Shown piece by piece: positions 34,215-58,342 of a stretch of DNA of 64,000 bases. The first letter of the stretch is position 1; each line of letters starts with the position of its first letter. The notes below the pieces were generated by a model. The model was not told the DNA's origin. It worked only from the letters and a program-made list of their open reading frames with translations, and did not search any database. Origin of the DNA: Basidiobolus meristosporus CBS 931.73. Its lineage: Eukaryota; Fungi; Basidiobolomycota. The translations under genes were made by a program, and so were the position numbers. The DNA lies in NCBI GenBank assembly GCA_002104905.1, contig MCFE01000379.1, positions 1 to 64,000 of the forward strand, given 5' to 3'.

Positions 34215-36411
34215 ATGGCGCGCCATACCAACGTCAATATCCACTCGATCTTTAGCAAATTAAACACCCTCAACGAGAAAACCAGACATGATGATAAACG
34301 ATCTTTTCTGCACTCCATCAAAGGGTTCGTACTTCACCTATACGACCACCTTTGGGTTGGATCCTCTCCTGACTAACTGGAATTACCCCGATTTGCAGTC
34401 ATATGCGTAGGAATAGTAAGGAGAAGTTCCATTCGCTTTTTGATCCTGGGGAAGGAAGTCCGCTGAACGATACATGGTAGACTACTAAACATGCCTCTTG
34501 CCTTGTACCCACTGGTCACTCAGATTTTCAATAGGCGCGGCACACCACTTCCAGTGTTTACCGGGGAAGATTCATCATACTCGCCCACCCTCTCACCTCG
34601 TAGTCCTCTCGACAGCCCAACGGTAACTGCCTACCCCACCTTCGCCAAAAGCTCCAGCCATTCCAAGAAGAGGTATTCCCCAGCGTCCACCACACGCCCC
34701 CTCACACCCACTAACGAGACCTAGACTTGTCCAGGACAACACCATAGAGGAGATCGCTCGGGAGATCGAGCAATACTACGTGCAGAACAATCAAAGAATC
34801 GAGCAATACATCGATCAGATCGCCACCCTCGAGGTACTCTTCTTACGCCCCACCCAACTTTCATCGGCCGACCGAGCCAAGTAACGATGTACCATTCGTT
34901 TAGAAACAGAAGCGAGACGCGGTCCAGGAAAGCAACCAATGGAAGAAGAAGTTCATCCAAGCGGAGAACCAATCCCACCAACGGGAGCTGGAGTTGAAAG
35001 GTAGGTTTGGAATGAACAGCGGTTGGGCACATGGGACGCATTCAAACGGAGCCTTTCTATGTAGAGGAGCTTCAGAAATTCCGGGAGAAGTACCTGCGCG
35101 ACCTCGACGGGATCAAACGGGCTCACCGCAAGAAGTGCCAGCAGTACGGAGACACGATCAAAAAGCTGATGACAACCAACGAGTCGTTCCGCTCCCAGTT
35201 ACAAGAATCCGGGATCGCCCCAAGTAAGACGCCAACGAGTTGCGTGCGTCCCCGTTCTTGCTTCTAACCCCGGGCTTTCATCAACTTCAGTCACCTCTAC
35301 CCCAATGGCTGGCCCCATGGTAGACCCGGAATACAACGAGAATCACGAATATATTAAGGTACCGTTTAGCCTGGCAAGCAGCTCCCCTACCGAGTTATGT
35401 AACCTGTTGGCTGGTATGTAGTGCAAATTCGCCGCCGCCGAGAAGCGAAGAGCCTCCCTGAAGCTGGAGGATGACCTGGCAATCTGGAACGAGGTAACAT
35501 ACCGCGCGACCTTCCCACCTGTCCCCCGATACTTACCAGAGTTTGATCCGTAGTACATGATTCTCGCTCTGGGGGTGGAATTGCGACAAGCACAAGTCCA
35601 GAAGATCCAGGAAACGCCGGAACGCCCTCACCTCGCTCCCGATTCGAGGAAGCCCCCACGACGCCGCTCAGCCCTTCGAACCCCCCATAGCAAGCGCCCT
35701 CACTATTCCAGCAGCCTGCGGGTGGGGGATCAGGAAGACGACTCGTGCCAAGGGTCGAAGCTCTCGGATGGGGACACCCTGTCAGATGAGTCTTCTTCAG
35801 CAGAAGAGAGCAGCACCCCCCTTCGATATATTACTTTGACTCGGGGCTCATCAGCCCAACGAGCCAGACATGACGTATCCACCACGCCTTATCTATCTGC
35901 ACAATCGTCTAGCACGTCCCTTTCCACTATCGAGGCGATCAATGCCAAGGACGAATCTCCCGATCTACATCCCATAGAAGTCAACTGTATCTCCGAAGCA
36001 GCAAGTCAGCCGCTCGGAAGGGAAGAGAGCGATGCCAGCAGTGACACCGATTCACAGGTGGACATTGCTCTCTCCACACCCCTAACGTTCGACGAAGAGG
36101 CTGAGCCCACTCACCCTCCAACCAAACCGGTCACCGAACCCGAGGAGCCCTCCAGCCCCACCCTCGGCAGCTACAATTCTCCACCCTATGTCACCTCCAG
36201 CCTCTCGGTGTTTGCTCGAAAACGCAACTCCGTTCGTACCGAATTCCCCGCACAGGACCGGCGGCGAAGTGTCGGTTCGATCAATTCGGCCGGGCGGGAG
36301 CAGCCCCACCCATTACAACACACTCCAGCCATGCGACGAAAGCCTCTACCCAAAACACCGGAGATTCAGTCGACCGCGACATCACAAGTTTCAGGTCCAG
36401 CCGACCTCTAA
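34215..36411 (+). CDS. Hypothetical multi-exon protein (~9 exons): central coiled coil, S/P/E-rich C-terminus
   Basis: GT-AG introns link MARHTNVNIHSIFSKL..., RLVQDNTIEEIAREIEQYY..., KQKRDAVQESNQWKKKF..., EELQKFREKYLRDLDGIKRAHRKK... and the long exon 35555-36411. No family recognised. Confidence 0.75.
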
Positions 36412-36662
36412 CATCACTGTAAAATACCCATCACCCCCTCCACCACCTCCCTGTCACCCTTCTACCCATTCTTCCCTAACTCACCCAGTCGATTGTAAAA
36501 ACTACATAGCCTCCGCGGAAGAATGGCTTACTCAACCTAGCGCAGATTTATTATTGATCTCCACACCAAACCTAACATCCATATATAAAGCCTAATCATC
36601 AGCCACCTCCGAATCCATTCAATTCCCCGACCACGAGTCGAACTCGATCTCACTCACTTGGG

Positions 36663-37999
36663 TCAATCGTTTCGGGTCAGGATCTCCACCCCGTCCTGAG
36701 TGATCAGCAATGTGTGTTCGAACTGGGCGGACCGCCCAGCATCCGCGGTCACAATGGTCCAGCGATCGGGCCAGGTCATGCCGACGGCAGTGCCTTGACA
36801 CAGGATCGGCTCGATGGTGAAGGTCATGCCGGGTTGCATCACGCCTTCCTCATGGTTCCCTAGGAAGTACCGGGTTAGCATGGTCCTCACGAACGTCCGC
36901 ACACAATCCCCCGAGAGCACTTACGATGATGTAGAATCAGGGGAAGCGAGTGGAACTCCCGGCCGATCCCATGGCCGGAGAGTTCGGTGGAGACAGAGAA
37001 TCCTTTGCTCTCGGCGTAGTCGCTGTATTATCAAGGCGATCGAGTTACCAGTCAAGTCACGCTTACATGTCGTTATCTGGGGAAGGGGGGTTACCATATC
37101 ACTCGGCCGATCTCCTGGAAGGGGGTGCCAGGTTTGCAAATGTCCACGGCCAAATCCAAGGATCTCTTGGTCGCCTCCACCAGCTCGCGCCCCTTCTGAT
37201 CCACGTTGCCGACGTAGAAGGTGGCGGAGTTGTCGCCATGAACGCCGTTCAAAAACACCTAAACCAGGTTAGTTGATTCGGAACCGCCAGCGATCTCTAC
37301 GTGTACCCCATTACCGTGATATCGATGTTGATGATATCTCCATCCTGCAGAGGTCGGCTGCGACCATGGAAGTGGTCAGAAATGTGGGGACTTGGAAGAT
37401 TCGCGTCGAGCTTACCTATCGGGGATGCCATGGGCAATCACGTTGTTGACCGAGGTGCAGACGGATTTTGGGAAACCCATGTAGTTTAGGGTGGATGGGT
37501 AGGCGTTGTGCTGGACGATCTCCTCGTGCAAAATCCGGTCTATCTCGTCGGTGGTGATGCCTACCTAAACCAAACCCCCCACCCCCGCCAAGGGAAAAGG
37601 TTAGCACCCACTTGGGGGAGGGACTTTTGCGAAGAACCTTACTTTGACCAACTGGCCACCTATGTCCAACATCTTTCGGGCCAGTCTTCCCGCCTCCCGC
37701 ATCTTCTCGATCTCCTCCGGGGTCTTGATGTCTATGCTGGCGCTCCAAGCGGGCGGTTCCCCGGTTTTGGCGTAGTTGGGGTGTAGGATATGTGCGGGAA
37801 CACTGCGTCGCTCCTGTTGCACCTTGTCACCTAAGGCCAAGCTGTTCGGGACTATCATTGAGTAAGAACCAAATACTCTGGGCGGGGTAAATGGCAGGGT
37901 CACCTTCCTACACCTCGGGGCACACAAGGCTCTGCCCGTATGGAGGCTGGCTCTCAGCATTCTGAAAGGTAGTCTGGCGGGGAAATGGGTTGGGTTCAT
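36663..37999 (-). CDS. METAP1D: Methionine aminopeptidase type I with organellar presequence (multi-exon)
   Basis: [49 protein letters not shown] and [11 protein letters not shown]. The Arg/Leu-rich N-terminus [19 protein letters not shown] has no zinc finger. Confidence 0.92.
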
Positions 38000-38171
38000 T
38001 CGAAACACTGCGTCACTATAGGGTAGGTCGAGTGCGGTGCGCTTGGGGGGGGGGGGGGAAGAGAAAATGGCGAAATCTATCTGGGAAATCAGAATTTTCA
38101 TTCCGTCATATGGGATGCGGCGGGGCGATTTTATTGAAGCCAGAAATTTTACAATGAATGATGGAAATGAT

Positions 38172-39693
38172 CTACAACCCGTCCACCAGCGTGGACGGTG
38201 CCTGGTTACGATAGACGATGTCGTGGATCTTGGTGAAGAGCGGGTACCTAAAGGGTGGAAGGTGAGAAACCCCGCCACGGGATGGGTTGACTTGGGGGAT
38301 ACCACGTACCGATCAGTCAATTGTCTTGCCGCTAGGAACGCATGAACCTCCTTGGCCGTCAATGTCCCCTGTAGCTTTTGGCCATGGAGCATCTCCTTCT
38401 CGAGCACATGGAATGGCTTGCCTGTAAGTACATGAGCCTCCGCCACTCTGCGATTGCGACCTCCGGCGCAAGTGGTTATCAGGTCCGCCACTCCACAGCT
38501 CTCAAAGAACGTCTCCACCTTGACCCCCGAGTAAAATGTCTGCGCGAATTGGATGATCTCCATCAAGCCGATTCTCATGATGGCGGCCTTCGTGTTATCT
38601 CCGAGCCTACTCGACAGGGTGAGTGAGGTTCGTCAATGCCGATGAGTGGGTTGTTTGATGAATACGTACTTGAGACCGTCAACGATACCCGCCCCGATGG
38701 CAACGATATTCTTCAGCGCGCCGCACAACTCCACCCCCGCGACATCATCCACCACGGTAACTCTGAAGTACTCCGTGTTGAACAACTTGCGGTAGATTTC
38801 CCCGTGCTCCTTCACTCGCGACCCAATGGTGGTCTCACAGAAATGCTCCAACGCCACTTCCTGGGCGATATTCGCGCCCGACAACACACTCGTCTCGATC
38901 CCCAGCGTTCCGGAGATCTCCTCTGAAAACAGACGAACCCCCTCGGAGGATGCGTCGATTCCCTAGATGATGGCTTAACATTGATCCCGGTAATACATCT
39001 ACTGATGAATGATGTACCTTGATCAGTGAGATGGCCTTGGCATCCGGGCGGACTTGGTTAACTAGATCGGCGCAGACCCCCTTCAGAAACTTCGATGCGA
39101 GTCAGTGAGAGCCCAGCATTCTCGTACTACTGTGACAGGTCAACATACTTGATGAGGCACAACAAATGCGATCACAGTGGCGTCTTTTACGCACGCGCGG
39201 AGGTCCGGGCAGGCGACCAGGTTGGTTGGAAGCTGGATATTCGGCAAGTACCTGAATGTTCGCAGATAGCGAGGTCAAGGCTTCCAGATCACATGATGTG
39301 GGGAGGATACCCTCCCATGAAAAAGCCGAGCGTGTAGCAAAGGATACTTCACGTTTTCGTGGCGTTGGTTAATCACCTCACTCAGCTTCTCGCCGCGGGA
39401 GATTTCTTCGTGAACCCACAGCCTCACCTCGGGGTCAAACTCCCCGTACCGCAACACGTTGTTCGCGAGGATCTTACTGACAGCGGTGCCCCTAGGAAAT
39501 GGTTAGGAATGGTAGGCCCCGCTCGTCCCCTCCCAACCCACACTAAACAAAACGGTTACCAGTTACCCGACCCGACGACGCACACCTTTTCTTTGGAAAG
39601 ACGGCTTGAGAGGCTGAATTCCCGAAACGAAGGCCGGAGACGGGCGAAACTTCGGGTCACCAGGCTGGTGTGACGTGGGAAGATGGAAAGCAT
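38172..39693 (-). CDS. GPD1: NAD-dependent glycerol-3-phosphate dehydrogenase (multi-exon)
   Basis: [10 protein letters not shown]|[48 protein letters not shown] and QKLQG. The last exon reads [12 protein letters not shown]...DGL*. Confidence 0.95.
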
Positions 39694-41205
39694 GCCTGTC
39701 TTCTGGTGAGGTCAAACCCCTCTGAGGAAGAAACGTATTTTGGTGAATCCCACCAAGGATGCACCAGCTCATCGGGAATTTGGCCGACTTGGATCTCCCA
39801 TATTATTGTTGCGGTATATCATCGCAAAGTGGAGCAGCCAGAAAACATGGTGGTTTGAGCTTCAGTTGGAAATCCGATAAAAAAACATTCAATCAATCCA
39901 GTGGAACACCATCTTCATGTTGGAACAAGCTGGTAACAACCTGGTAACAACCGACCTATTACCTGGGGTGGGGTACTTGGGTAATATCTGCATGTGGTAA
40001 AAATGGTCACTTTCCATCCCGCATTAATAAGGAATGAAAGGCTTACTTACTGGTGAAGGCTGAGCTGGCCAATCAGGACGAGTACGGTGAAAATAACCAT
40101 CTGGGTCGATCCAAAGAGCAATTTAAATTGACAGATGATTACCAAAGCAAATGGCACTATATTGTGCTAGCCAGCTTAGGCCTAATATTCTAGCAATCTA
40201 CGGATATGGGAATTCCATCATACACCACTCGCCTAACGGGTGCCTTCATCTTGCCTTGTACGGAACATGGCTTGGACCTTTTCCATAGATGCTTGAATGC
40301 CAGGGTATTCAAGCTTAGAAGGGTATATCAGATACGGCATTCCCAGAAGATGTATTGCAAAAAGGATTATCCACGCCACGAAGAAAGAGACTGAGGCCTC
40401 CAGAAAGCGCTTCTCCCTTATTTTACAATTGGTTTAGCTTATCTGGAGACCCAGTGGATGTGGCAGTGGGTTAGCTTGCACAACAATGAACCGGGCAACG
40501 CAAGTCTTAGGTTTGAAGACAAAGCCCAGCTCTGCTCGGGGTGAAATGGGATGCTGCAAGGGGTGGCCGAATCCTCAGAAAAACCACTGCTTAAAATGGA
40601 TAATGAGTACCGTATTTTCGGGGCATTTTCGACGTTTAGAGAGTTGAGCGGTCGCCTGGAAAAAACCCAATGCCCCATCCCCGAATGCTCGACATAAATC
40701 CCGATCAATCCAGGGCCAACGATACTCCATTAAGCAGATTCGAACGATCAATGGGGGTTTTGGGAATGTCTGGACATCGCCGGCAAGTAATCCAATATGG
40801 ATCATGCAAACTCCCGATTTCGATTGGACCTTGCTAATTTGGGCGGTTTCTCTGTCGCTTTCATGAGTACCTGATTGGTCTTAGATTACGCTTATGATTT
40901 ACTAGGGTTTGGGTTGCTTCAACGGAGTGACGCTGTTGCTGGCGCTTTGTGGGTGCTAGGTGGGCAGGGTGCGACGTGAAGTGTGAGATAGAGGGTAATT
41001 GGAGGATATCAAGAGCGAGGAGATGATGGGACGAGGCTGAGACCATATTTCGTTGATGTTTGTCCAAGTCTCGGATCGAAGGTGTGTGAAAATATGGGAT
41101 GAAACGAAGCCAATGTTTCCAAGTCATGAGATATGAGCAGGAGGCGCTGATGAATTTTCCGTCATGAATCATGAATATCAATATGGATATAGATAGAGTG
41201 CGGAA

Positions 41206-41851: not shown

Positions 41852-42856
41852 TTAATCCTTCTTGCGCTTTTCGGCTTCGTGATGAGGAGGAGCGACCCAG
41901 TACATGCACCCGTGGACCATACAGGCGAGGAGAGGGGCAATCCAAGGGATCCAGTGCTCTTGGAAGTTTCCGGAGGCAACGGCGACACCGAAGAACTTTG
42001 CTGGGTTGGCACCGACACCACCGTATCCATCGGTAAGACCACCACTGACATAAATGTTAAGACCAAGGGCCAGACCCACACAGATAGGACCGACAACTGG
42101 ACCGAAGACCTTTTGCTGCTTGGGGTCGATGGCGGTACCCCAAGTAAGCCATACGTAAGACCAACTGAAGAAGAACTCCAGGCAGAAAGCCTGACCAACA
42201 CTCACGATCTCGGGCTTGAAACCCCAGGAACCAAGCTTGGTAGCTTCGGTGACAGCCTCACCACAAGCGGCGCGAAGCATAGCACCTCCAAGCATGGCAC
42301 CAATGCAATGCATGCCCAAATAGATAATGGCACGAGGAACCGAGCAAAGACGAGTGAATACGGCAGTCCAGGTAATACAGGGGTTGAAATGGGCACCGGA
42401 GACGGAGGCAGAACCCATAATGTAAAGAGTAAGGGTGACGAAGACACCCAAACCGACATCAAGCGAAACAACGGGACCTCCAACTTGAACGGCCCAAACA
42501 GTAACACCGCATGAAACCAAGACGTAAAGGGCCATCAAGAAACATTCGTGGACACCCGAACGCCAGATGGCGGGGTTGCGGAACTCAGACCAGTCAAACA
42601 TCTGCTCATAGGACAAATGATCTTCGTCAGCGATAACGTCAGGATGGAACTCGGGTGTAGGAACGCCTGAAAGAGACTTTCTGTGAGGAATAGCATTGAG
42701 GGAAGCTTGGCGACTACGAGTGATGTGTTGTTCTAGCGAAGCAAGGTGCTCATTACTGAGAGGGACACCAACGTTGAGAGCAGTCTCGTGAGGTCTAAGT
42801 TCGGTGGCTCCTTGACTAACAAAGCCATCGGGAGGGCTGAGTCTTGACGATTCCAT
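41852..42856 (-). CDS. Major intrinsic protein (aquaporin), XIP-like, single exon
   Basis: Six hydrophobic helices with SGAHFNPCIT and GANPAKFFG pore motifs and C-terminal HWIPWIAP. Likely start MESSRLSPP at 42856. Confidence 0.9.
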   Translation of the reverse strand: MESSRLSPPDGFVSQGATELRPHETALNVGVPLSNEHLASLEQHITRSRQASLNAIPHRKSLSGVPTPEFHPDVIADEDHLSYEQMFDWSEFRNPAIWRSGVHECFLMALYVLVSCGVTVWAVQVGGPVVSLDVGLGVFVTLTLYIMGSASVSGAHFNPCITWTAVFTRLCSVPRAIIYLGMHCIGAMLGGAMLRAACGEAVTEATKLGSWGFKPEIVSVGQAFCLEFFFSWSYVWLTWGTAIDPKQQKVFGPVVGPICVGLALGLNIYVSGGLTDGYGGVGANPAKFFGVAVASGNFQEHWIPWIAPLLACMVHGCMYWVAPPHHEAEKRKKD

Positions 42857-44580
42857 AATGAGATATTGAATACGAAATGATAGTGTGGTACAAGGGGGCA
42901 CCAAGGCCCACTTATATACCTTTTCCGTGGACCACATTTGAGGCTATCGATCATTTTGTTCTTTTCAGCATTCTGTGACCCAGATACCAATCCCAATCAA
43001 ATCGCTTAAACGATACCGTTAGATTGCTATATTTTGATGATGTTCAAGTCGAATTTGTGCTATCCAAGTAATTTTGGATTTTTCCTAATTAACCTGATAT
43101 GGCTGATATTCTAACTGCCAAAGTAAGAAGACTGAGATACTATAACTAGATAATGAGTGATTATTTGCTCCATATAAGGGATTTTTTCGTTGCCTATTTG
43201 ATGTATCTACAATTACCAAATCAGTCCATGAAACTTCTTATCCCAAAGACTGTGTCCAATTTCGTCTCAGCTGCCACCAAATCGAAATGTTTATAAGTTG
43301 GTATATAGCTGGCCTACGGAACATTCTAAAATGATCATCCATTGCCATCCATCATATCCGAGATGTTGTGGTCAGATTCCAGAACCTGACATGATTTCTT
43401 GGTCAATGTTACATCGTCTGAGACTGACAAGGACGTGTATTATGGCTCAATAACCCCCGGGTTTATCTAGCAGAGGTGGGATTACATCAGTAAGCTAGTG
43501 AATAAATATATAGGACAGAGCAATCTCATCCCATCATAGATTAGGTTAAATTACACCAGTTGCCATGATTCGTATGTGGAGTAGTGTAACCAGGTAACCC
43601 GCCTAATCAGGTTTTTCAAATACGGATGCTGGTCATGAATTACAGCTAGTATGTAACGCGCTTCCTGATCGATATGGCTTTCCAATCATTGGTGTGTTCC
43701 GGCAAATCATCATTGTCAACATACCTCTCTCGACATCAATTGATCCAGGAAAGTTCTATTGGTTTGCTCACTAGTTTCCGGGTTCCTCCAAATGGTATTG
43801 AACCTGGTCAGCGGTAATTATCCAAAAGATTTGACCATAGTTTTAGCGGTGTTTCCCATTTGTTGCACACACGGTCACCATATTAGGAGAATCCCAGATT
43901 TGATTAATTGGACTCATTGGGAAACGTGAGGATTTATAATTGCGTCAATCACTCACATTTCCTGATTTCATTAATTGAATTCATAATGGTTTTTCAGAAT
44001 CGGAAGCAACTGCCCAAAAGTCACTCAATAGTTTTCCCAAAACCCAAATAAACCGCACCAAAAAGGAGGTTGTTACTCACTGTCCCCATACACTAATTTC
44101 ACTTAAACGACCAACGTCCTCAAACATCCTGATTTGAAATGAATAACCAAGCTGAGTTTTTAAGAATGTTTCTCACGTTTACCCAGCGGGCAAATTTAAC
44201 TCCCTTTACATGTGTTGCCATAATTTACTATGGTACGCTCCTACATGTTGCCTCCGTCCGGGATTCAAGTCCGGTTGTTAGTCACAAGTTTTAAATTGGT
44301 GCAAATAATTAGGAAGTGTTTTACTTATTCAGTCGTGTCGCTTTCATACTTTGGATTAATTTTATCATGATTTTTCTTGAACTTTTGATTAGTTAACAAA
44401 ATAGTCAAGTATTTAGTCTCGTACCAATCATGCCTGGACTAATGAAGAGCTTGGTGCTTGGTTTTTAGTAACTTAATTTTGCACATGAACAGTCGGTGAA
44501 AATATAGCCTAAGTCATACCAAGGGGATATTTAATGTGGCAGTGGCGACCTGGAAGTGGTTGGGAGTATTTAGAAGAAAA

Positions 44581-45900
44581 TGTTGCAAATTTCGTGATGA
44601 CACCTAAATGTTCACCTAACTCATAGTCCACAAATCTTGGAGAATTCTGGCCAAACTCCTTGTCGGGATTTACTATGAATATTTTCGCCAAAACATCAGG
44701 TACCCAGAATGTGAGGTATTTCAGAGTTATCCAAATAGCCCCAAACTTTGCATACATGTTCTTGGACCTACCCGAACATATTTAACGTATTTTCTTTGCC
44801 ATAACTACTTGAAAGTATATATACTACATTTACATTCAATAGATCATTAAGTGAATACCACAAAGTCTACTTACGCACCCAATCACTTCCAATATCTCCA
44901 CAGCTCTTACAGTACTATCTAGACATATTCCACTTGCTTTGTTGCCAGGGCCATGCAGAAGTACAAATACCACACAATCTACAGGTTCTCCCAATCACTT
45001 CCGGTATCTATAAAACTCTTACAATATGAGCAAGATGTGCAATATTTGAAGGCTGTTGGGTAAGTTTGAAAATTTTGGGAACTTCCGGGCCTTCACTAAT
45101 CCTGAGAGTTGGCTGATGACTTACAAACTAAATCATAATCGATTATTCCGTAATTGGCTAGCAGTCAAATATGTTGTAATAGTTTTGACAATATTGGAAG
45201 TGATTGGGAGAACCTGTAGATTATGTGGTTTCACTCAATGATTCATTGAATGTGAAAGTAGTGTTTATACTTTTACATGATCCTGGTAAAATAAGCATGT
45301 AGAATATGCCAAGGAAGTTCCCGAAAGCATGTGTGCAAAGTTTGGGGCTGTTTGGATAACTTTGAGAATATTCATGTTCTGGGTACTTGATGTTTTGATG
45401 AAAATATCCTCCAAGATTTGTAGGTAATGATCTAAGTGACTGAATTAGATCAATATGTAGGTGAAATTCCAGACCTTTACAAGCAAAATAGAGCCCTAGG
45501 GTATATGTAGTACATGTTGTAAGAATCTTAGAGATATTGGAAGTGAGTGGGAGAACAATTAGATTATGTGGTTTTCACTTGATGATTTGTTAAATGTAAA
45601 AGTAGTATTTATACTTTTACCTGGTCCTGGCATTACAAACATGTCGAATAGAGTAAGGAAGGTCTCAAGAACTTGTGTGCAAAGTTTGGGGCTGCTTGGA
45701 CAACTTTGAGAATTTTCATGTTCTGGGTACCTGGTATTATGGTGAAAATATACTAAGTAAATCCAATTTTCATATTCTGGGTAAATATTCTAAGTAAATC
45801 TCAACAAGGAATTTGGTCAGTATTCTCTAGGATTTGAAGGTAATGATCTAAGTGACTAAGTTAGGTGAATATATAGGTGGAATTACAAGCTTTTACAACA
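44581..45900. mobile_element. Island of solo or partial LTRs of the resident copia family
   Basis: A diverged + copy at 44581-44911, fragments at ~44960-45480, and a - copy at 45515-45900 with a short internal duplication. All match the LTR of copy D. Confidence 0.85.
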
Positions 45901-48333
45901 ATTACTTCTAAGAATTAATTAATATGCTACAAACTATATCTTAGGAGAATAGCTCATAGCCTAGCAATAGACAAAGTAGATTCCTTCATTATAGAATTGG
46001 TTTAGGTGTGAATTAAATACTCAAAGTAATATGAGTGTCCTGGGTGTACAGTATACATGTTGCATTTTCTTCCACATTGTTAGTATCATATTGGTCCACT
46101 CCAGTAGATTCTGTACTTGTATAAACCAGAATTAATATGGACACTTAGGCTCCCGCTTAGTGTGTTTGGTATTGTAGTAAGATTCTAGAGAGTATTAAAA
46201 GAGATTTGAAGAACTAGAAGAGATGCATCACACTCAATTGTTGATATACTAGTTCAACAAACATCTTTTTATACTATTAGGGAAACTATGTGAAGCAAAT
46301 GATGTGAGTTAGCTGAAAGAAGTCTCAGAAAGTAGTCCACAAGGCCTAGGGGCTCTTGAGTAATTACAATATCTAGGTCCTCACTAATTCTAAGAGTAAC
46401 CTGATATCCAACAATTAGTATCTTTGGTGTATAGCTCATGGTTTAGCAATAAGTTGAATAGAATTTACAGGTATGCAAATAAATTAGGTTGAACTCACTG
46501 CCCAAAACTACAGTTTCCTGCTAAAACTCTTTGTCAGGGCCTGCTTCAGATGTCTTCATCAACATGTGTGCTGACAGGTGAATGGAAACCTGATAGTTGG
46601 AAAGATTTTCCAAGTAAATGTCAACAGGGAATTTAGGCATGATATTTCAAAATTCATTGACTAGGATCCAAGTGACCAAATGGATAGAGTATTTAGTCAC
46701 AACACAAAATTCACAACATTCTGAACCACTTATTAGATGCTTATGTTTAGAGTACATGACATCTTGGAAATAATGTTCCAAGTATATCCAAACATAGGAT
46801 TTAGACCACAAATACTATGGCTCATAAATTATGATTTAAGTGACCAAGTTAATGGAGTATTTGGGTGTGACTACAAAGACTTGCAACATGACCTACCTAT
46901 TCTTGTAATCATTATCAATAAATCCAAAAACCTCATTACAAGTACAATTATGGGAGATCTTTGATTTGTTGATAAACCAGGTTGAAGTAAAGCCTCACTA
47001 GTTTGAGGGGAACCGTTATAAAGTAAGAATAAGCATACTTTTGGGAAGGGCTTGGACCATTTGGATGTGTTTCAAGATTTGGGCACTTCTGGTATCTCCA
47101 CAGTTTGAAGCAATTGGTGGGCAGATCAAACAGCTTTAATGTCATATAAAAGAAAGTATAGGATCAAAGTTGGCAAATATCTGTGCTGGACTAATTATTA
47201 GCAGCAGTTGATACTATAAGCAACACGCTCCTTTTGCTGAATTCCTCGCGGTGAGGGGGACACCAGCACCAGCAACGACCAATTTATGGCCGTATTCCAA
47301 CCTTCAGGGATCACTGGTGGCTATTGTAAAGTAATCATCGAAATTCAATTCGTTTTGCAAACAATCAGCTTGGAAATTATACAGTAGGCGATAAACGGAT
47401 CATTTGCAACCCAAGTCACCACCAATACTCCCCCCAAACTCTTGCGATCAACAGTGCCAACAAAACAGAGGGATTTTTGATATCCCTTGCTGCCACTGGA
47501 TGTGACTTGATGTCGGAAATTCCAATTCAAGGTGCGCTGATCAAGTGATGGTAGATTTATTCATGGTTGGGTGGGACTTGGAGGGGATTGAGCTTGGTAC
47601 ATATACCACCATGGATTTTCACTGGGCATCCACCAGTCTGCTTATGATCCCTTTGAATGGTTCTCCACGGATCTTAACCATTCTCGCAAACTTGGGTCAA
47701 ACAAGTAGCTTGGCGGATTCGGGGGCCACTGGTGAGCAACCTCTGTGCAGTATCTTCCTAGCGCTACTCAAATATGTATGATTTATCTAGAAGGATGGCG
47801 CCATCGTCTTGGCTACGGGCATGACTTCCCTCCGGATCATTCTGCCAACACTGCGCATATCTTGGTGTGGGACCGATAGCCAGATAGAACAAACATCGGA
47901 CTATCTGGTGCCACTGGTCCTCCTAACCTGGCAATCCCCGAACGAAAAAGGCTGCATTGGACAAAGCGACTGGGATCTGGTTGTTGGTTATCACTCGCCC
48001 TAGCCCTAACCCACTGGCTATCACTCCACATGATTGGAAAGGAATCATCGGGGTTGCTCAACGCTTTCCCGAATCGCCATCTCTATTGGTGGTTGAGGTC
48101 ATGAATCCATATGATTCACCATGTATCATGATTCCAAGAGCCAAGTGCTCCAAACCAATCACATGGGAAGGTGATAATCGAGCAGTATACTACGGGCCAA
48201 TGAGAACCCCCAGCCGGAGCACTCTAGGGCGTAACCCCGAAACTTTTCGTTCGATTCGAGAGTATACCACGATATAACATGCGTACTCGGTAGGTTGCGC
48301 TTCAGTAACCCCCCGCCTGACCCCGACAACACC

Positions 48334-49317
48334 ATGGAACTTATCCCCGAGCTGACCGACCGTTTGCTGTTCGCCATACCCAAAAAGGGTCGTCTTCACG
48401 AGAAATGCCTTCAGCTGCTGAAAGGGGCTGACATCCAATTCCACAAAAAAGCCCGCCTCGACGTGGCGATCGTACGCAACTTACCCATCGCCTTAGTGTT
48501 CCTGCCCGCCGCCGATATCGCCACTTTCGTCGGCCAGGGTAACGTCGACCTGGGCATCACAGGGGAGGACATTATCGCCGAATCGGACGTTCACGGCCAG
48601 GTGGAGAAGGTCATGGATCTTGGGTTCGGAAAGTGCCGTCTCTGCATCCAGGTCCCCGTCAAGGGGGAGATCAAGAAGGTGGAGGATCTGGTGGGCAAAA
48701 GAATCGTCACCAGTTTCGAGGGCGTCTCCCGCAGATATTTCGATGGGATCGACGCGACCGTTCTCTCCGAGGAGGAGATCAAGGCCAATAAGGGGACCAA
48801 GATCACATGCATTAGCGGCAGTGTGGAAGCGGCTTGCACCCTTGGTTTGGCCGACGGGATTGTGGATTTGGTTGGTAAGTGGGCTTGATTCGGTGACTTG
48901 CACTCGACGACCTCGGCGTGACTAACATAATTCCATTTTCCAGAATCGGGAGAAACCATGCATGCCGCTGGCCTCCATGATATCGCCACCATTCTCACCA
49001 CCGAGGCGGTTCTGATCTCCAGAAAGTCCTCCAAGCATGTGGAGCTGATCTCCAAATTGAAGTCTCGTATCGAGGGAGTCATCGCCGCCACCAAGTACGT
49101 TTACATCAACTACAACGTTGATCGCAACAAGCTGAAGGAAGCCACCAAGATCACCCCCGGTCGTAAGGCCCCTACAGTCAGCCCCTTGGAGAATGATGGC
49201 TGGGTCGCTGTAAGCTCCATGGTGTTGAAGGCGGATGTCGCCGATATCATGGACGAGCTCAAGCACATTGGTGCCACTGACATCATGGTGTTTAACATCA
49301 ATAACTGCCGTGTTTAA
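48334..49317 (+). CDS. HIS1: ATP phosphoribosyltransferase (long form), one intron 48875-48943
   Basis: LLFAIPKKGRL, VDLGITGED, GSVEAACTLGLADGIVDLV|ESGETM and TPGRKAPTVSPL. The intron has GTAAGT, GACTAAC and CAG signals. Confidence 0.97.
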
Positions 49318-49876
49318 TGTAGTTCAGATCCAAACTAATGTTTATACCCCCACCACCCTCACTGCCCTCACCACCCACTCATCTGCTGTGCCCATAGAAT
49401 AAATCACCATCGCTATGACGTCGTTGGCTTGCTGATCATTACAAACTGTCCATTAGTGCACCACAATAGAGATCCACCCGCAATCAAGGTCTGAGCGATT
49501 CTAGGCCTCAATGGGCAATATACCAGGAATCACTGCACCGAATGATCGATTCGGGAGCCAATCATCGCTGCAATCGCAGTGTTTAGCCTCTCGACGGAGT
49601 CAATGTTCTAGCCCTGAGAGGACCAATAACAAATATCGCCACCTTCCGTGGGCTCACATAGCGAAGTGGCATTTTGGACGATCGATTGAAGTGACAGCAG
49701 TGGGGCCAATCATCAAGATTTAATATAGGTTTCGTTCTCGAATTTCGATGCAAGCCCCGAAATCTATAGCGCAGATTAACTCAATTATACTAATACCCAT
49801 TCCGGCTAATGCTTGGTATTTGCTCATATATATACCGGTGGACCATCCACTCTTCCCCTCTTCCGTCACAGTAATC

Positions 49877-50450
49877 ATGCAGTCGAACAACAAGCAACAC
49901 AAAGTCGTGGTCCTCGGGGATGGTGCAGTTGGTAAGACTGCGCTCACGGTCCAACTCTGCTCCAACCACTTCCTAGAGACATACAACCCCACCATTGAGG
50001 ATTCATTTCGTACTCAGGCGGTGATCGACAAGAAACCATGCTCCTTGGAGATTTTGGATACAGCCGGCCAGCAGGAGTTTACAATGCTGCGAGATCAGTG
50101 GATTCGTGAGGGAGAGGGGTTCCTCCTTGTATACTGCATCGCAGCCAGGTCTAGCTTCGAGCACGTCGAGATGATCCGGAATGAGATAGCCAAGGTCCGG
50201 GATATCACCAAGACTCCGATCCTCCTGGTCGGTAACAAATGCGACAAGAAGACCGAGCGAGAGGTGTCCCAGTTTGAAGGGCATCGCGCTCGCCAAGCGA
50301 TTGGGATGCCAGTTCATTGAGAGCTCGGCCAAAACGGCCGTGAACGTGGAGAAGACGTTTCATCGGATCGTGCGTCTGATGCGATCCAAGCAAGAGGAGC
50401 CCCATGGTCGGAAAGTCAACATAATGAAGACCAAATGCCACTTGATGTAA
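49877..50450 (+). CDS. RAS2: RasB/Ras2-like small GTPase, copy 1, with a 1-bp insertion at ~50284 (pseudogene or sequence error)
   Basis: GDGAVGKT, YNPTIEDS, DTAGQ and NKCD. Deleting the T at 50284 restores SAK and a CAAX end KCHLM* (TAA 50448-50450). Intronless. Confidence 0.9.
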
Positions 50451-50816
50451 ATTCAATGTAGAGTACCTCACACGTAGACACACAATATGTACATACCAGC
50501 ACCAACCATATATCATCGATAAATAAATTCCCCATAGAAACCGATAGAAAATGATTTATAGTCTATCTTCTTCCATTTTTCGCTAGAAGCAGTCTGGTTC
50601 AATTCACCACTCCAGACGCCACGATATGATATAAATAGATTGCCACAAAGTGCGCAGCGGAATGTGAATTCAGTGATCGTTCGGGTGGCTTCATATGTGG
50701 TTGAACCAAAAAGTCTATATTGAATCGAAGTTAAATCCTTGATTTTATTTACATGGACTGGAGGCGACGGATTGGATGGTATTTTACAAGTTGAGTGCTA
50801 TGCTACACCAATATAC

Positions 50817-51386
50817 TTACATCAACAGGCACTTGGTCTTGGTTTTGTTGGTGCAGCCAAGTAGTTCCTCTTGCTTGGATCGCATCAGACGCACGATCCG
50901 ATGAAACGTCTTCTCCACGTTCACGGCCGTTTTGGCCGAGCTCTCAATGAACTGGCATCCCAATCGCTTGGCGAGCGCGTGCCCTTCAAACTGGGACACC
51001 TCTCGCTCGGTCTCCTTGTCGCATTTGTTACCGACCAGGAGGATCGGAGTCTTGGTGATATCCCGGACCTTGGCTATCTCATTCCGGATCATCTCGACGT
51101 GCTCGAAGCTAGACCTGGCTGCAATGCAGTATACAAGGAGGAACCCCTCTCCCTCACGAATCCACTGATCCCGTAGTGTCACAAACTCCTGATGTCCGGC
51201 TGTGTCCAATATTTCGAGGGTGCATGGTTTCTTGTCGATGACCGCCCGAGTCTGGGAGCAATCCTCAATGGTGGGGTTGTATGTCTCTAGGAAGTGATTG
51301 GAACAGAGTTGGACCGTTAACGCTGTCTTGCCAACCCGTCCATCGCCGAGTAAAACAACTTTATGATGGTTGAGCTTCGCCTTCAT
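50817..51386 (-). CDS. RAS2: RasB/Ras2-like small GTPase, copy 2, intact 189 aa, with atypical catalytic residues
   Basis: GDGRVGKT, YNPTIEDC, DTAGHQEF, NKCD, SSAK and CAAX CLLM with an upstream Cys. Intronless. Confidence 0.95.
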   Translation of the reverse strand: MKAKLNHHKVVLLGDGRVGKTALTVQLCSNHFLETYNPTIEDCSQTRAVIDKKPCTLEILDTAGHQEFVTLRDQWIREGEGFLLVYCIAARSSFEHVEMIRNEIAKVRDITKTPILLVGNKCDKETEREVSQFEGHALAKRLGCQFIESSAKTAVNVEKTFHRIVRLMRSKQEELLGCTNKTKTKCLLM

Positions 51387-51682
51387 AGGTAACCAGCAAG
51401 TTCGCACCGCCCTTCTTATACAGCAAAATGAAACGCCACCAAGATGATTGGCGAGGCGAACAAGGCAGCTTTAAAGGCTAATCGCCAACCGTTTTGTATG
51501 TAGAAGATTACTCAAGATTGATAAGCGAATATATTTGTACAATCTGATGGCCGGATATATCCATCCAGAAGGATCGTCAGCTTTGTAAGCAACTCAGTGG
51601 ATTAGATACTATGGAAACGTGACAGAATATGCATTTCAATTGAATGTTTATTTTGATGGCAAATCGAGGTTGTCCGTTGGAT

Positions 51683-52239
51683 TTAGGCAGTAAGAACAAC
51701 GGCACCACCAGTTTGCTTAATCTTCTCTTCGGCACGACGAGAAACATAACGAGCCTTAACGATGACGGGTTGCTCGGGGAGACGTCCCTTACCGAGAACC
51801 TTTCCGTAACCGGCACGAAGAGTGTCAATGACTGGAACAACTTCCTTGTTGGCGGCATACTTGACACGGGTTTGCTCAGAGACCAAGGTCCACAATTTGT
51901 CAAGGTTGACAACAGGGCGATAGTATTGGTTACGAGTCAAATGGAAGTGACGCATACCAACCTTACCGAAGTAACCAGGATGGTACTTATCCATGTTGAT
52001 ACGGTGGTGATGTTGACCACCAGCCAAACCGCGACCTCCCGGATGTTTTCTGTGCTTACCAACACGACCGTGACCGGCGGAGACGTGTCCGCGCTTCTTT
52101 CTGTTATGATGGAGTCTGGTAGGCTAGTAGAAGGGAAAAGTAGGGTCAATAAATAGTCCGCAACAGAGAAGATCGTCAACTGCATCCATCGCATGCATAT
52201 CTCCATCCATTTCATTCACTGATAATGATCACGTACCAT
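51683..52239 (-). CDS. RPL28: 60S ribosomal protein uL15 (L27a/L28); exon 1 is the ATG only, intron 52124-52236
   Basis: M|[59 protein letters not shown]. Confidence 0.97.
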
Positions 52240-52667
52240 GGTTTAAGGCCAAGCGGGAATATGAGAGAGGAAGAAACGCCTGGTTGGGCATTCGCTCCTA
52301 TATGGTTGATTACTACGAAAAAAAACTTTCCATTCGAGGATTTTTTTCTGATCTTTTGACTGGATGGATGGTGGTTTAGTTCCCGTGATCCGCTAGTTAT
52401 CAGAATTCCCGGCCAGTTTAATCAGAAATGTATGCTTGCTTGGCTTCTTGTTTAGCCAGTCGGAGGTTGTTTTTGTTTTGAATGTGGCTGATGGTCGTTG
52501 ATTGGGCCATAGGTCATGGTGTTTACACATTGAGCCAAATCATAAATAAACAACTCCCGGTCACTAATACTAGTTTAATCGTCTGTTTGGTTTGCACTTA
52601 CACCACCTAGAGTGAACTTGTACCGGTTTCGTTTTCTTACTTTCGACCCATACACGAAGCACAGCCC

Positions 52668-55600
52668 ATGAGCAAATTCAACATCCAGGACGAGCTGGAG
52701 AAGCTTCAGGACAACAGCGTCAAAATCGACAATGAGGTGGATGTCGCCAACTTGAATCCCGCTGCCGTGGAGACGTTTTTGAACGGTAGGGTCCCCACTT
52801 TTACGCTTCCTTTTGAAATGTCCATCTAACCTTTGGGATGAGCAGATGCTGTAGATAAAATCGAAGATAACTGCGAGTCTATCACCGACATGGAGGTGTT
52901 CGACTGCTTTCGCAGTTTCATCAAGTAAGGATCCATGGAAGCCATCTGTATTCATGCACCAGTACTGATCTTCCACCAAATCAAATAGGTATTTCGACTT
53001 GCTAAAGCCACAACAGAGCAACAAGCTCTTGGACATCATACTGTCTGGATTCCAGACCCAAATCGATCAAACAGAGGAGGCAGCCTCGAGCAATAGTCCA
53101 CCATACGACCAGCAAATCCAAGCGTTGATGATGTATGGATTTCTTCTTCATTGGCTCACGAGAGTGGCCGAAAAGAGGGCTATGGCCAAGAGCACCGCTG
53201 ACAAGAATGCCGCTAAAGCCAAGAAGCCTCGCAGTAAGCGTGACGAAGAGCAAGAATCGTGGGACTGGATGCAGCATAAGCAAAAATCATTGGAATTGAT
53301 GTCCAGAATGCTCGACATCAAACTGAACAAAATCTGCAGCTCCTCCCATGAGCGCGACACATGCGTCAATCTACTCACTCGCTCCGCCTATCAAATTCTC
53401 GAGAATCCAGATAACACGAAGGCCACACCAATCAAGCTCCAGGCGTACCACATCATCAACAAGAGCGTTGTCGACTATGAACACTCATTTGCTGCGCAAA
53501 CCACGATCTTGCAGAACCTCCAATACTATGAGCACTTAAGTGAGCCGATGGCTGAACTTCTACATTCGCTGGCCGAACAGTTTGAGTATCCACAACTCGC
53601 CGAAACCATCCTCCGTGAGGTCAGCAACAAGAATTTCCACACGAATGACAAGAACGGGCCCAAGTCGTTCGCACGCTTCCTGGTTAAGCTCTCCGAACTC
53701 TCGCCGAAACTGATACTCAAGCAGATGGGGCTGTTGGTTCGTCAGCTGGACAGCGAATCTTATGTGCTCCGCTGCGCGTTGATCGAGATTGTAGGCCATA
53801 CCATTCTGCACTTGGCCACGCTGGAACAGAACGACATTCAACACAAGCAGATCGATCACTACTTTGACGTCTTGGAGGAAAGATTTAGAGACCTGAATTC
53901 CATCTGTCGATCCAAGGTCTTGCAGGTACTGTCTCTACTTTGCGACAGCAAGGCCAAGTTCCCCAAGAGAAGACCTCGCCTGGTCGCCCTGGTTATCAGC
54001 CGGCTAGAGGACAAAAGCAGCAACGTCCGGAAAAATGCCATCAGGACACTTTCCAGGTTTTTGGAGACGCATCCCTTCCTGATTGAAGGGGGTGAGCTGT
54101 TCCTGGACACTTTCCAGAACAGACTGAACCAAATCGATCAGGAATTGAAGGAGATTGTTATCCCCTCCCTGGGCAAACCCAATTCCAAGAAGAAGTCTAG
54201 AAAGCTATCTCACAAATCCACCGACGAAAGCCGTGACGATGATTCTTCCGAGCAGAGCAATGACGAGGAGGAGGAAGAAGAGGATCAAGCCGAGGGCGAA
54301 CAAGACGGCTCCGATGAGCCTGCCCCTAACCCACTCATGAACCCAGAAACCGCCACCAAGGTGATTCAACTTCAGTTCCACAAACGCTACTACACAGACG
54401 CTGTTCAATTCGTCGAGAGCATCCATGAGGCGATTCCTGTACTCTGCCAGCTACTCGGATCCACCACCAAGGCTGAGGTGATCGAAGCCATGGATTTCTT
54501 TGTTACCGCCACTAGATACAAGATCCAAATGGCCCAAGAGGGAATTCGTAAGATGCTTCACTTGGTCTGGGTCAAGGATAACGGCAATGACGAAACCAAG
54601 GGGGTTCGAAGCCGCCTAATCGATTCCTTCCGTGCGCTGTATCTGACCAGCGACCCAAGCCTTACTCCCAAGGAGAACGTCAATCTTTTCTCCAAAAATC
54701 TAATCGGTTTGACCCTGGACTCTTCTCTGGCAGAGCTGACCTCCTTGGAGGAGATTCTGAGCATCATCATGGCCGAGGGATATATTCCTGAAGAGCTGGT
54801 GTCTAAATTATGGGGCGTGTACGGCATCACGAAGAAGGAAATCCAAAGATCCAACGTCGCGGCGCCATCATCATTTTGGGAATGCTAGCCAAGGCCAAGA
54901 AAGAGATCATCTCGGAGAGAATCGATCTTCTACTTAAGATTGGTATGGGCGATTTGGGCAGGGATGACTTGGGCTTGGCAAAATACACCTGCCTGGCGCT
55001 GCAGAGACTAGGTGAGGTGAAGAGAGGCAAGGGTCTGGTCAACACTGGCAACATTCGTCTTCCTTTGTCGCATCCGATCTTCAAGAAGATTGAGGAGTTC
55101 ATTGAGCAAGACTCCGACTCCAGTGAGTGGTCTACCGTTGCGGAGCAAGCCGTCAACACCGTCTATCTACTCTGCGACCACCCCGATGTTTTGTGTGGAA
55201 ACATCATCAAAGCTAAAGCACGCCAAGTGTTTGCTAAAAGCCCAGCAGCCGAAGCGGAGTCCGAATCAGAAACGAATGACGACTCCAAGCACAACGCCCA
55301 AACCACCTCATTGCTCTCGCAACTGCTCTTCATTGTAGGCCACGTTGCCATGAAGCAGATCGTTCATCTAGAGGTCATCGAGAGCGCCTGGAAAAAGAGA
55401 AAGGCCGAGGCCAAGCAGTCGGCCAGCAAGAAGCCAGATGATGATGAGTTGGATCAGGTGGTTGGATCGACCGAAGATGATGTTGCCGACGTGATCAGCC
55501 ATGTTCGTGAACGGGAATTGCTTTTCGGAGCCAAATCGTTGTTGGCAACATTCGGGCCCATGGTCGTACACATCTGCGCAAACAACACCACCTACCCCGA

Positions 55601-56561
55601 CCGCTTGCTTCAAATCAATGCAGCATTGGCACTGGCGAAGTTCATGTGCGTCAGCAGTGACTTTTGTGAGAAACACCTTCAGCTGCTCTTCACCATGCTG
55701 GAGAAATCTGACGACCCAATTGTTCGAAGCAACATTGTGATCGCACTTGGCGATGTGGCGGTCTGCTTCAATACCCTGGTTGGCGAGAACATCGCATTCC
55801 TTTACAAACGCCTCCGGGATCCAGACAGTTCTGTGAAGAAGAACACGTTAATGGTGCTTACGCATCTAATCCTCAACGGAATGATCAAGGTGAAAGGACA
55901 GCTGGGCGAGATGGCCAAATGCTTGGAAAACCCCGATCAGAGAATCAGCGATCTCGCTCGCTTGTTCTTCACTGAACTGGCTTCTAAGGATAACGCCGTC
56001 TACAATAACCTCCCCGACATGATCAGTAGCTTATCATCGGGCAACAACGCCGTCGATGAGGAATCGTTCAAGCGGATCATGAAGTTCTTGTTTGAGTTCA
56101 TCAAGGACAAAGAAAGGCAAACCGAGAACATCGTGGAGAAACTGTGCCTCCGTTTCCGCAACACTGATGATCAGCGTCAGTGGAAGGATATCTCGTATTG
56201 CCTTTCGTTGGTCCAGTACCGATCGGACAGAACTTTCAAGAAACTGCTCGACGGTATGGTGTACTTCCATGATAAGCTCCACAACAACACCGTCCATCAC
56301 CACATGATGGAGATTGTTACCAAGGCCAGGTCTCAAGTGTGGCAACGAGACAAATCGATGGTGGATGAATTCGAGAGTAAGATCGCGGAAATCAGAAAGT
56401 TCGCCGAGAAGCCAAGCGATGAGCTGGACGACGAAGATATTGCCGCCATCATCGGCGAACCAACGGAGGAGGAGCAAGAGAGCGAGGCCGAGGAATCCGA
56501 CGAAGAATCTGGCGAGACCAAACAGGAATTGGAGACCAGTGAGATCCTCGCCTCAGCCTAG
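52668..56561 (+). CDS. YCS4: Condensin complex subunit 1 (Cnd1/YCS4/CAP-D2); two 5' introns and an apparent 1-bp frameshift at ~54843
   Basis: HEAT-repeat motifs LEDKSSNVRKNAI, KAEVIEAMDFF, IRKMLHLVW, QRRGAIIILGML, RSNIVIALGDVAVCFN and LTHLILNGMIKVKGQLGEMAKCL. Confidence 0.95.
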
Positions 56562-56876
56562 ATTTGTTAATGAAACCATACTTTTTGTTTTCCTTTGTAT
56601 GTTGCCCTCCAATCTGTATATATTCCGTTGGCTTGTTTACTAAACTAGATACATTCATTGTTTACTTCCCTGCCTAAATTATTATCAAGCGAGATGAGTT
56701 TTGTTTACTTCCTGCCTACATAGCAAGTTGTTTGCTCGTTATAGAAAGCGAAGGATGTGGCGAGGTGAATATGTAGATACAGCGAAGGGTTTATTGAAAA
56801 ATAGAATTGTTATGGAATGATTTCTTCTATGCTTAAATATTTGAAAAGTCCGTGTAAATCATTGTTTAAGTAGTGG

Positions 56877-58342
56877 TTAAATTAAAATTCGGTCTTGATG
56901 GCATTGATCGTCAAATCCAGGCATGGGGAAAGACATGGCGAACTCCTGGACCTCCTTCTTCAACTTCTCTAATTCCTCATTGCCCTCAAGAGTGGCTACG
57001 AAATCCTTGATGAGCTTGCTACCAGCCTTCTCTTGAGCAGCAAGAGCAATTTGGACCGCACGATGAAGGAATTCAGCAACCTTAACGAAATCTTCCTCCT
57101 TGAAACTTCTGGAAGTCAAAGCAGAGGCTCCGATACGAACACCACCTGGGGTAACTGCGGATACGTCACCATGGACTGCGTTCTTGTTGAGGGTAATGTG
57201 GCACATGTCACACAACTTCTCCAACTTGGAGCCAGTCAATTTCTGAGGTCTAAGATCCCACAAAACCAAATGATTGTCGGTTCCATTGGTGACAATCTTG
57301 TAACCGTGGCTAGCAAGTGTTTCGGCCAAAGTACTAGCATTGGCACGAACTTGCTTAGCATATTGCTTGAACTCGGGGGAGCCAGCTTGCTTGAGGGCAA
57401 CAGCTACGGCAGCAATGGTGTTGTTGTGTGGTCCGCCTTGGCAAGAGGGGAAAACAGCCTGGTTGACTCGAGATTCGATGTCGTTCTTCTTGCGGAAGAA
57501 GATGATACCGGCACGAGGACCTCTGAGAGTCTTGTGGGTGGTGGTAGTGACAATATCACAATATTCGAAGGGGTTTCTAGCTTCTTGGGCAGCGACCAAA
57601 CCAGAAATATGGGCCATATCGCACATAAGGTATGCACCGTGTTGGTCAGCGATCTTTCTGAATCTGGCGTAGTCCCAGTCTCTAGCATAAGCAGAGGCAC
57701 CACAAATCACCAGTTTGGGTCTGAAGAGAGCAGCATTTTGCTCCAGTCTATCATAGTCGATGATGCCAGTAGCGTTGTCAACTTGATAGGGCATGGATTC
57801 GAAGTAAATCGACGAGGAAGAAATCTTCTTCTTGGAGGTTTGGTAACCGTGAGTCAAATGACCACCAGAAGGTAAATCAAGACCCATAATACGGTCGTGG
57901 GGCTGGATCAAAGCAGTGAAGGCGGCGAAGTTGGCAGTACTGCCAGAATAGGGTTGAACGTTAACTCCCCATTCCTCAGGGTTCAAGTTGAAAGCTTTAA
58001 GGGCACGTTGGCGGCAGATATTTTCAACCTGGTCAATGAATTCGTTACCACCGTAGTAGCGAGCGCCTGGAAGACCTTCCGAGTACTTGTTGGTGAGGCA
58101 AGAACCGTTGGCCTCAATCACAGCTTGGGAGGTGAAATTCTCCGAGGCAATCAATTCTAAGCCAGAGAACTGTCTGAATTTCTCTTTTTCAATGAGGTCG
58201 AAGATTTCTCTGTCTTCTTGCTCTAACGAAGTGTTGAGACAAGTATTCTGAAAGCAAGGGAATCGGTTAAAGAAGAAAACGAATGCAGAAACAGTATCCT
58301 ATTGCATACCCAGTTATCAGCAGGCTTAGTATTGTAGACCAT
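56877..58342 (-). CDS. SHM2: Serine hydroxymethyltransferase, cytosolic type; intron 58248-58309
   Basis: [11 protein letters not shown]|[55 protein letters not shown] and FPSCQGGPH. No mitochondrial presequence. The last few codons are uncertain. Confidence 0.96.

Follow-up and report, generated by a model that had tools for sequence, protein, structure and literature searches.

Organisation of the Ras locus

The analysed stretch of DNA, hereafter the window, comprises 64,000 nucleotides of Basidiobolus meristosporus CBS 931.73 (GCA_002104905.1, contig MCFE01000379.1), and window coordinates are identical to those of the record. It contains two Ras genes, designated copy A and copy B, that are arranged tail to tail with 366 bp between their stop codons (Table 1). 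HisG lies upstream of copy A and the gene for ribosomal protein L27A upstream of copy B. Copy B is annotated in the record as a 189-aa gene, and the annotated protein matched our translation exactly.

Table 1. Positions of the two Ras genes, the motifs of copy B, the conversion tract and the marker genes in the window. Residues follow H-Ras numbering; L002 denotes the second Ras-containing block of the same genome.
Feature	Position	Strand	Basis or remark
MIP (aquaporin-type), left block marker	41852–42937	−	Pfam MIP 3.7e-32; 77% aa identity to L002 MIP
HisG (ATP phosphoribosyltransferase), two ORF pieces	48295–49317	+	Synteny anchor flanking copy A
Copy A, convergent sister gene with Ala13, Gln61 and Phe40	49877–50450	+	Annotated as 147 aa
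Conversion tract, copy A arm	50093–50398	+	Codons for about residues 73–174, downstream of switch II
Copy B, Ras2-type gene, 189 aa, stop codon included	50817–51386	−	ORF and translation; Pfam Ras
CAAX box CLLM of copy B	50820–50831	−	
Conversion tract, copy B arm	50866–51170	−	Alignment, dS, repeat finder
G5 motif SAK of copy B	50931–50939	−	
G4 motif NKCD of copy B	51018–51029	−	
Switch II start DTAGH of copy B	51192–51206	−	His61 codon CAT at 51192–51194
Effector loop (H-Ras 32–40) YNPTIEDCS of copy B, holds Thr35	51255–51281	−	
P-loop GDGRVGKT of copy B (G1, GxxxxGK[ST])	51324–51347	−	Arg13 codon CGG at 51336–51338
Ribosomal protein L27A	51683–52239	−	Synteny anchor flanking copy B
SHMT, right block marker	56877–58154	−	Pfam SHMT 6.8e-177; 88% aa identity to L002 SHMT piece

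To the right of this group, a condensin subunit 1 gene (52999–56561, plus strand) is present as two overlapping ORFs, with Cnd1_N at 52999–54888 and Cnd1 at 54810–56561; the split is due to an intron or to a change of frame around 54810–54888. A Copia-type LTR retrotransposon occupies 28258–31845 on the minus strand (gag, pre-integrase and Pol beta-barrel at 30394–31845, RVT_2 at 28258–29757), and a second copia-type gag ORF was found at 600–1421 on the same strand. Positions 34001–40000 have a G+C content of 0.53–0.56 compared to 0.36–0.42 elsewhere on the left side of the window; ORFs of this block include the C-terminal domain of a glycerol-3-phosphate dehydrogenase (37601–38578, minus strand) and a 284-aa ORF (35557–36411, plus strand) that gave no Pfam match.

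Copy B encodes a Ras2-type protein with Arg13 and His61

The Pfam Ras model (PF00071) matched the copy B protein at 1.8e-50, with 171 bits against a cut-off of 21.6, whereas the Arf model reached just 6.9e-08, which places the protein outside the Arf/Sar family. No GBP or dynamin family match was obtained in Pfam, and the 189 residues contain a single Ras domain. Alignment with the structures of Rap2A, a Ras protein and KRAS extended from end to end (E ~1e-47) and confirmed the register of the numbering, in which the residue number of copy B itself equals the H-Ras number plus 4. The elements G1 to G5 that characterize the Ras subfamily are all present, including Thr35, DTAG, NKCD and SAK, and the C-terminus, NKTKTKCLLM, consists of a basic stretch that precedes the CAAX box. 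The catalytic arrangement of Gln61 with Gly12 and Gly13 is not retained; Gly12 is kept, position 13 is occupied by arginine and position 61 by histidine. Copy B thus has wild-type substitutions of the kind (at 12/13, 59 or 61) by which atypical GTPases are recognized. As judged from its sequence, copy B is a real Ras2/RasB-type paralogue with its nucleotide-binding and prenylation motifs intact.

These results bear on a sequence-only reading of the locus, which had described an intact RasB paralogue with R13 (CGG) and H61 (CAT) that retained T35, NKCD, SAK and the CAAX box. Both codons were found as described, each of the retained motifs was located in copy B, and the assignment to RasB is in agreement with the Pfam result, with the nearest relatives and with the position of the protein in the Ras2 tree.

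The proteins closest to copy B were Basidiobolus 'RAS2' proteins with 79–86% identity, followed by Ras2 of many fungi with 55–64%. In the maximum-likelihood tree, copy B was located within the Ras2 tree, inside a clade that contains only Basidiobolus proteins and sits on a long stem (support 100/99); within this clade, six genes including copy B form an Ala13 subclade (support 94/98). Compared to classical Ras, the Basidiobolus clade differs at positions 13, 33, 39, 40, 62 and 64. Based on the tree, copy B belongs to a fast-evolving offshoot of fungal Ras2/RasB that is restricted to Basidiobolus. Paper searches for literature on Ras proteins of Basidiobolus found nothing.

The residues at positions 13 and 61 are rare in this family. 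Among the 120 best Ras2 homologues, the P-loop reads GDGGVGKT in 101 and GDGAVGKT in four, all of the latter belonging to the six-gene Basidiobolus subclade, with GDGRVGKT detected in copy B only. The switch II motif DTAGQ is present in 117 of the same 120 proteins, and DTAGH only in copy B and one protein of B. ranarum. Rac and Cdc42 have GDGAVGKT as their P-loop, and Ala13 itself is compatible with a normal GTPase cycle.

Gene conversion between copies A and B

When the two copies were aligned, a central tract of 305 bp differed by only two substitutions and a one-base indel; the repeat finder splits the arms at this indel into 123 nt at 97% and 407 nt at 88%. For the first 64 aligned codons, dN was 0.119 and dS 0.77, in comparison to a dS of 0.031 for the core partition that holds the tract. 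The central 305 bp have been homogenised by gene conversion, which we claim for this part of the genes only. As the tract begins just after switch II, what distinguishes copies A and B is essentially the P-loop, both switches and the C-terminal tail. Together with a 467-bp spacer, the near-perfect 305-bp arms form an inverted repeat between convergent genes (50093–51170), and read-through across the arms would give a long hairpin RNA.

In the assembly, copy A has an additional T at 50284 that shifts its frame and cuts its product to 147 aa. The look-up of public runs returned X1 and X2, both from a single sample, which contain 87–89% of the words of the stretch; this sample may be the assembly's own source. 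A contig of 305 nt from X2 that spans 50093–50398 had no other letters and carried the copy A alleles at both neighbouring variant sites, without the T, and in B. ranarum copy A is complete and in frame at the corresponding site. The frameshift is not confirmed by the lone spanning contig, which is unphased because contig assembly pops bubbles; it could be an error of the assembly or derive from a single branch of a collapsed bubble.

A second Ras pair in a duplicated block

The same genome encodes a second convergent Ras pair on MCFE01000408.1 (block L002), at 6001–6586 and 8573–9158, in which both genes have Ala13 and Gln61. These two genes are 98% alike over 586 nt with ~2 kb between the arms, and conversion has homogenised all but their first few codons. 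The pair is embedded in a common block: the series MIP (minus), Ras (plus), Ras (minus), SHMT (minus) occurs twice in the genome, at 41852–58154 of the window and at 265–12582 of L002, in the same order and orientation, with HisG, L27A and the condensin gene being absent from L002. This arrangement points to an old segmental or whole-genome duplication that was followed by gene loss. Since the Ras pair is flanked alike in both blocks, the tail-to-tail pair is older than the block duplication; after the latter, the L002 pair was homogenised by conversion and the window pair evolved the B type. The L002 genes were also considered as orthologues of the window genes, and this was rejected because both blocks belong to one genome and are hence paralogous. 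With copy A and the L002 pair, copy B has at least three close paralogues in the genome, i.e., its redundancy is high.

Origin of Arg13, His61 and the effector-loop changes

We compared the pair with that of B. ranarum (GCA_040143965.1), in which the Ras genes are split over short contigs. The gene adjoining L27A in this species encodes 193 aa with Ala13, His61, Cys39 and Ser40, and the gene adjoining HisG has Ala13, Gln61 and Phe40; the His61 gene is thus associated with L27A and the Gln61 gene with HisG in B. ranarum as in the window. Inverted downstream of the B gene of that species lies the 3' portion of copy A, which encodes SAK and a CHLM box, and therefore both B. ranarum copies are intact.

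Both B copies use CAT at codon 61, where the four other genes of the subclade encode Gln by CAG or CAA. The derived states common to both B copies are Ser40, the loss of Arg41 and His61. Copy B and its B. ranarum His61 orthologue differ with a dN of 0.065 and a saturated dS. Any dS-based comparison of these species will be biased by the shift in GC3 between them, and synonymous patterns are partly compositional. His61 predates the split of B. meristosporus and B. ranarum, because it is shared by orthologues whose synonymous sites are saturated between the species. For the orthologous Ras genes, GC3 was 0.65–0.71 in B. meristosporus and 0.34–0.36 in B. ranarum (JASJQH). Sites with the orthologue pattern were non-synonymous in 4 of 6 cases, as compared to 14 of 65 sites with the species pattern (Fisher p = 0.03). 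An excess of synonymous sites with the species pattern had been considered as proof of conversion in the 5' half as well, and this was dropped because the GC3 gap makes the pattern largely compositional.

Codon 13 is CGG in copy B versus GCA or GCG, both encoding Ala, in the five closest genes. Because these five genes have Ala13, the step at this position was from Ala to Arg and not from Gly to Arg; it requires at least two adjacent base changes and was seen in this genome only. Arg13 is later than His61 and was added in the B. meristosporus line. Run X4, from a relative that is ~92% identical, covers part of copy B; its listed differences end ahead of the His61 codon, and no X4 sequence falls on the Arg13 codon. 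When the N-terminal 75 aa served as the query for fragments of the gene in closer strains, no candidates were returned.

The sequence-only reading is therefore to be amended at several points. It had presented position 13 as a G13R equivalent, and the starting residue in that name is wrong. A comparison with related genomes, which it had proposed, located His61 in the syntenic B. ranarum orthologue as well and Arg13 in this genome only. The effector-loop changes that it listed (D33N, S39C and Y40S) are all present as residues; however, D33N is common to the whole Basidiobolus clade, and Cys39 is ancestral to the clade because the L002 pair has it as well. Ser40 alone among these changes is specific to the B lineage.

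Selection on copy B

Under a codon model with the six genes, omega was 0.062 when the N-terminal 64 codons were used and 0.054 with 140 codons; pairwise values were 0.15 for the A/B pair of the window and 0.08 for the pair of B. ranarum. The sequence-only reading had named a value near 1, together with lack of expression, as the mark of a decaying duplicate, and the values obtained for the clade are far from 1. Over the 64 codons, the B lineage has 7 replacements (positions 13, 40, 41, 43, 61, 65 and 66), all of them in the P-loop, in the end of switch I and strand beta2, or in switch II. The A lineage has 4 replacements over the same codons (8, 39, 52 and 66), and the excess of 7 versus 4 is not statistically significant. 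The pattern of the B replacements fits either a directional change of the switch surfaces or a somewhat relaxed constraint.

The strongest alternative to a maintained signalling protein is that copy B is a redundant duplicate that starts to drift, in which His61 is tolerated, Arg13, Arg43 and Val65 reflect relaxed constraint, and there is no special signalling role. Such drift would be consistent with an Arg13 that is private to this genome, with the higher number of replacements in the B lineage, and with the close paralogues on both contigs; moreover, copy A could, as a conversion donor, help to preserve an open frame in the 3' half of copy B even if B itself is not under selection, and among the public runs on record as RNA none holds the stretch. 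The ORF, however, is uninterrupted across 189 codons, also in the 5' part outside the tract and in the C-terminal tail, which is private to copy B. Omega is low for the clade and for the A/B pair, the excess of replacements lacks significance, and an intact orthologue has the same B-type residues in a species that is saturated at synonymous sites in comparison with B. meristosporus. We therefore regard drift as rather unlikely, roughly a one-in-five prospect. Outright decay to a pseudogene was largely rejected on the intact ORF, the omega of about 0.06 and the conserved His61: since His61 is shared with the orthologue and the clade is constrained to this degree, decay is unlikely, and copy B appears to be selectively maintained. 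It is probably a working atypical Ras whose His61 is old and conserved.

Predicted behaviour of the copy B protein

In human KRAS, Q61H impairs both the intrinsic and the GAP-mediated hydrolysis and decouples Ras from SOS (PMC8560773). H-Ras G13R co-purifies with more GTP than the wild type and with less than G12V or Q61L (PMC12719659). These reports support the statement of the sequence-only reading that both human substitutions impair hydrolysis.

Our preferred reading, to which we assign a probability of about 0.5, is that copy B is maintained and that its protein is a slow-hydrolysing, GAP-insensitive and largely GTP-bound Ras with a changed effector face. Because a histidine at position 61 of the Ras active site impairs hydrolysis, the B protein is probably slow, insensitive to GAP and mostly GTP-bound. 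As the comparisons above show, the A partner of an old pair kept Gln61, and the B gene gained Ser40, lost Arg41 and gained His61 before the species split; Arg13 was then added, from the Ala13 of the clade, in the B. meristosporus line. Conversion keeps the halves downstream of switch II near-identical, with the half that holds the P-loop, switch I and switch II staying different. The B protein would also be farnesylated, and its output would be set by its abundance and by the changed effector surface (positions 40, 41, 43, 65 and 66) and not by the GEF/GAP cycle. Control would then act on level and location, as in animal Di-Ras, kappaB-Ras, Rnd and RhoH. Arg13 may reinforce the state caused by His61 or be neutral on top of it; since no other genome was seen to have it, a neutral or mildly harmful effect is also conceivable. 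Given that the Basidiobolus clade departs from classical Ras, the rules of human Ras may fail to carry over.

It has also to be considered that GTP is still hydrolysed by another chemistry, which would make the protein a GAP-independent, self-timing switch and not a locked one. As in Sar1 or EF-Tu, the water could be positioned or activated by His61, and Arg13 could serve as a built-in arginine finger. In Sar1, His79 occupies the position of Ras Gln61 and is required for hydrolysis (PMC2150902). The GxxRxGKT sequence of copy B places its arginine at the position of Arg48 of GBP1 and R77 of atlastin, which are internal catalytic fingers (PMC5084822). Both precedents speak against the constitutively GTP-loaded protein, as a fixed-on signal or an effector/GAP decoy, that was put forward in the sequence-only reading; overall, the interpretation given in that reading is partly supported. 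The intermediate GTP content of H-Ras G13R (PMC12719659) would also be compatible with residual catalysis, and an Arg13 that is younger than His61 in one lineage is what a compensating change would look like. Against this, both substitutions lower hydrolysis in human Ras (PMC12719659, PMC8560773), the finger of GBP1 acts only after dimerisation of G domains of the dynamin type (PMC5084822) whereas copy B has a plain Ras domain, and the B. ranarum orthologue has long kept His61 without any arginine in cis. Overall, we consider retained hydrolysis improbable. The more specific proposal, in which Arg13 arose after His61 as compensation and both form a cis catalytic pair in a Ras fold that is GAP-independent and self-timing, seems to us very improbable.

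If copy B is impaired in hydrolysis, it would represent a Ras-subfamily case from fungi of the wild-type 'oncogene-like' GTPases, which to date are described chiefly from animals (Di-Ras, kappaB-Ras, Rnd and RhoH). If it still hydrolyses GTP, then Arg13 and His61 would not be intrinsically disabling in the Ras fold. The locus provides a built-in control, i.e., a Gln61 sister gene in immediate convergent vicinity with an almost identical C-terminal half; since the differences between A and B are essentially confined to the P-loop and both switches, the effects of these residues are easily compared side by side. It is also a locus at which a duplicated switch protein keeps its regulatory half distinct while conversion homogenises the rest.

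Reliability of the two codons

Contigs of X1 and X2 obtained from Logan on 51141–51289 and 51267–51500 had no other letters and reproduced the codons of both Arg13 and His61, so the proposed verification in read data bore out the deposited sequence; the check was conducted on contigs, and minor variants could escape it. Because these separately built contigs match exactly, neither codon is an artefact of the deposited assembly. That the two codons are errors of the assembly, which is presumably a long-read one and has in the adjacent copy A a one-base insertion that is absent from a read-derived contig, was accordingly rejected as extremely improbable: the contigs match 51141–51500 without one difference, two or three base changes, and no indel, separate Arg13 from Ala, and another species has the identical His61 codon.

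Run X3, a small run from the same study with another organism name, contains exact pieces at 49974–50122, 51115–51170 and 51141–51289. The pieces fall solely within both Ras coding regions; neither the spacer nor the promoters are represented, nor are the 5' coding parts. X3 could be a transcriptome or a cross-contaminated library, and it was not counted as expression of copy B.

Comparison with known GTPases

The best full-length relatives of copy B are fungal Ras2/RasB proteins, such as Ras2 of Ustilago maydis and of Mucoromycota and Zoopagomycota. Copy B shares with them a similar length, G1 to G5, Asp11, Thr17 and the basic tail with the CAAX box. Canonical Ras2 reads GDGGVGKT, YDPTIEDSY and DTAGQEEY; compared to these sequences, copy B has Arg13, Asn33, Cys39, Ser40, His61, Gln62 and Phe64, and it is located on the long branch that holds only Basidiobolus proteins.

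Sar1, through His79, and the translational GTPases with DxxGH resemble copy B in having a histidine directly after DxxG (PMC2150902); Sar1, however, belongs to the Arf/Sar family, with Sec23 as its own GAP and an N-terminal membrane anchor, whereas copy B has a CAAX tail and no amphipathic helix at its N-terminus. GBP1 and atlastin, with GxxRxGKS, share with copy B an arginine at the third variable position of the P-loop, which equals position 13 of Ras (PMC5084822). Theirs are large G domains of the dynamin superfamily in which the finger is engaged by dimerisation, and copy B is without such a domain.

The oncogenic G13R and Q61H alleles of human Ras have these residues at the corresponding active-site positions, likewise in a G domain of the Ras subfamily. 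Unlike in these alleles, the residues of copy B are germline and fixed, and His61 is conserved between species; position 13, moreover, started from Ala, and nearby switch residues also differ.

A further parallel is provided by the atypical animal GTPases. Natural GTPase deficiency is established for Rnd, RhoH and RhoBTB (PMC8072805) and for DIRAS and NKIRAS (PMC8526694). In Di-Ras1/2, NKIRAS (kappaB-Ras), Rnd1–3, RhoH and RhoBTB, as in copy B, the wild type departs from Gly12/Gly13, Ala59 or Gln61, and several of these proteins keep a CAAX box as copy B does. They belong to other subfamilies and have other residues at the position of Gln61; their low GTPase activity and mostly GTP-bound state are documented (PMC8072805, PMC8526694), whereas for copy B they are predicted. 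Wild-type GTPases with 'oncogenic' residues are thus already known from animals, and copy B adds a fungal Ras case to them.
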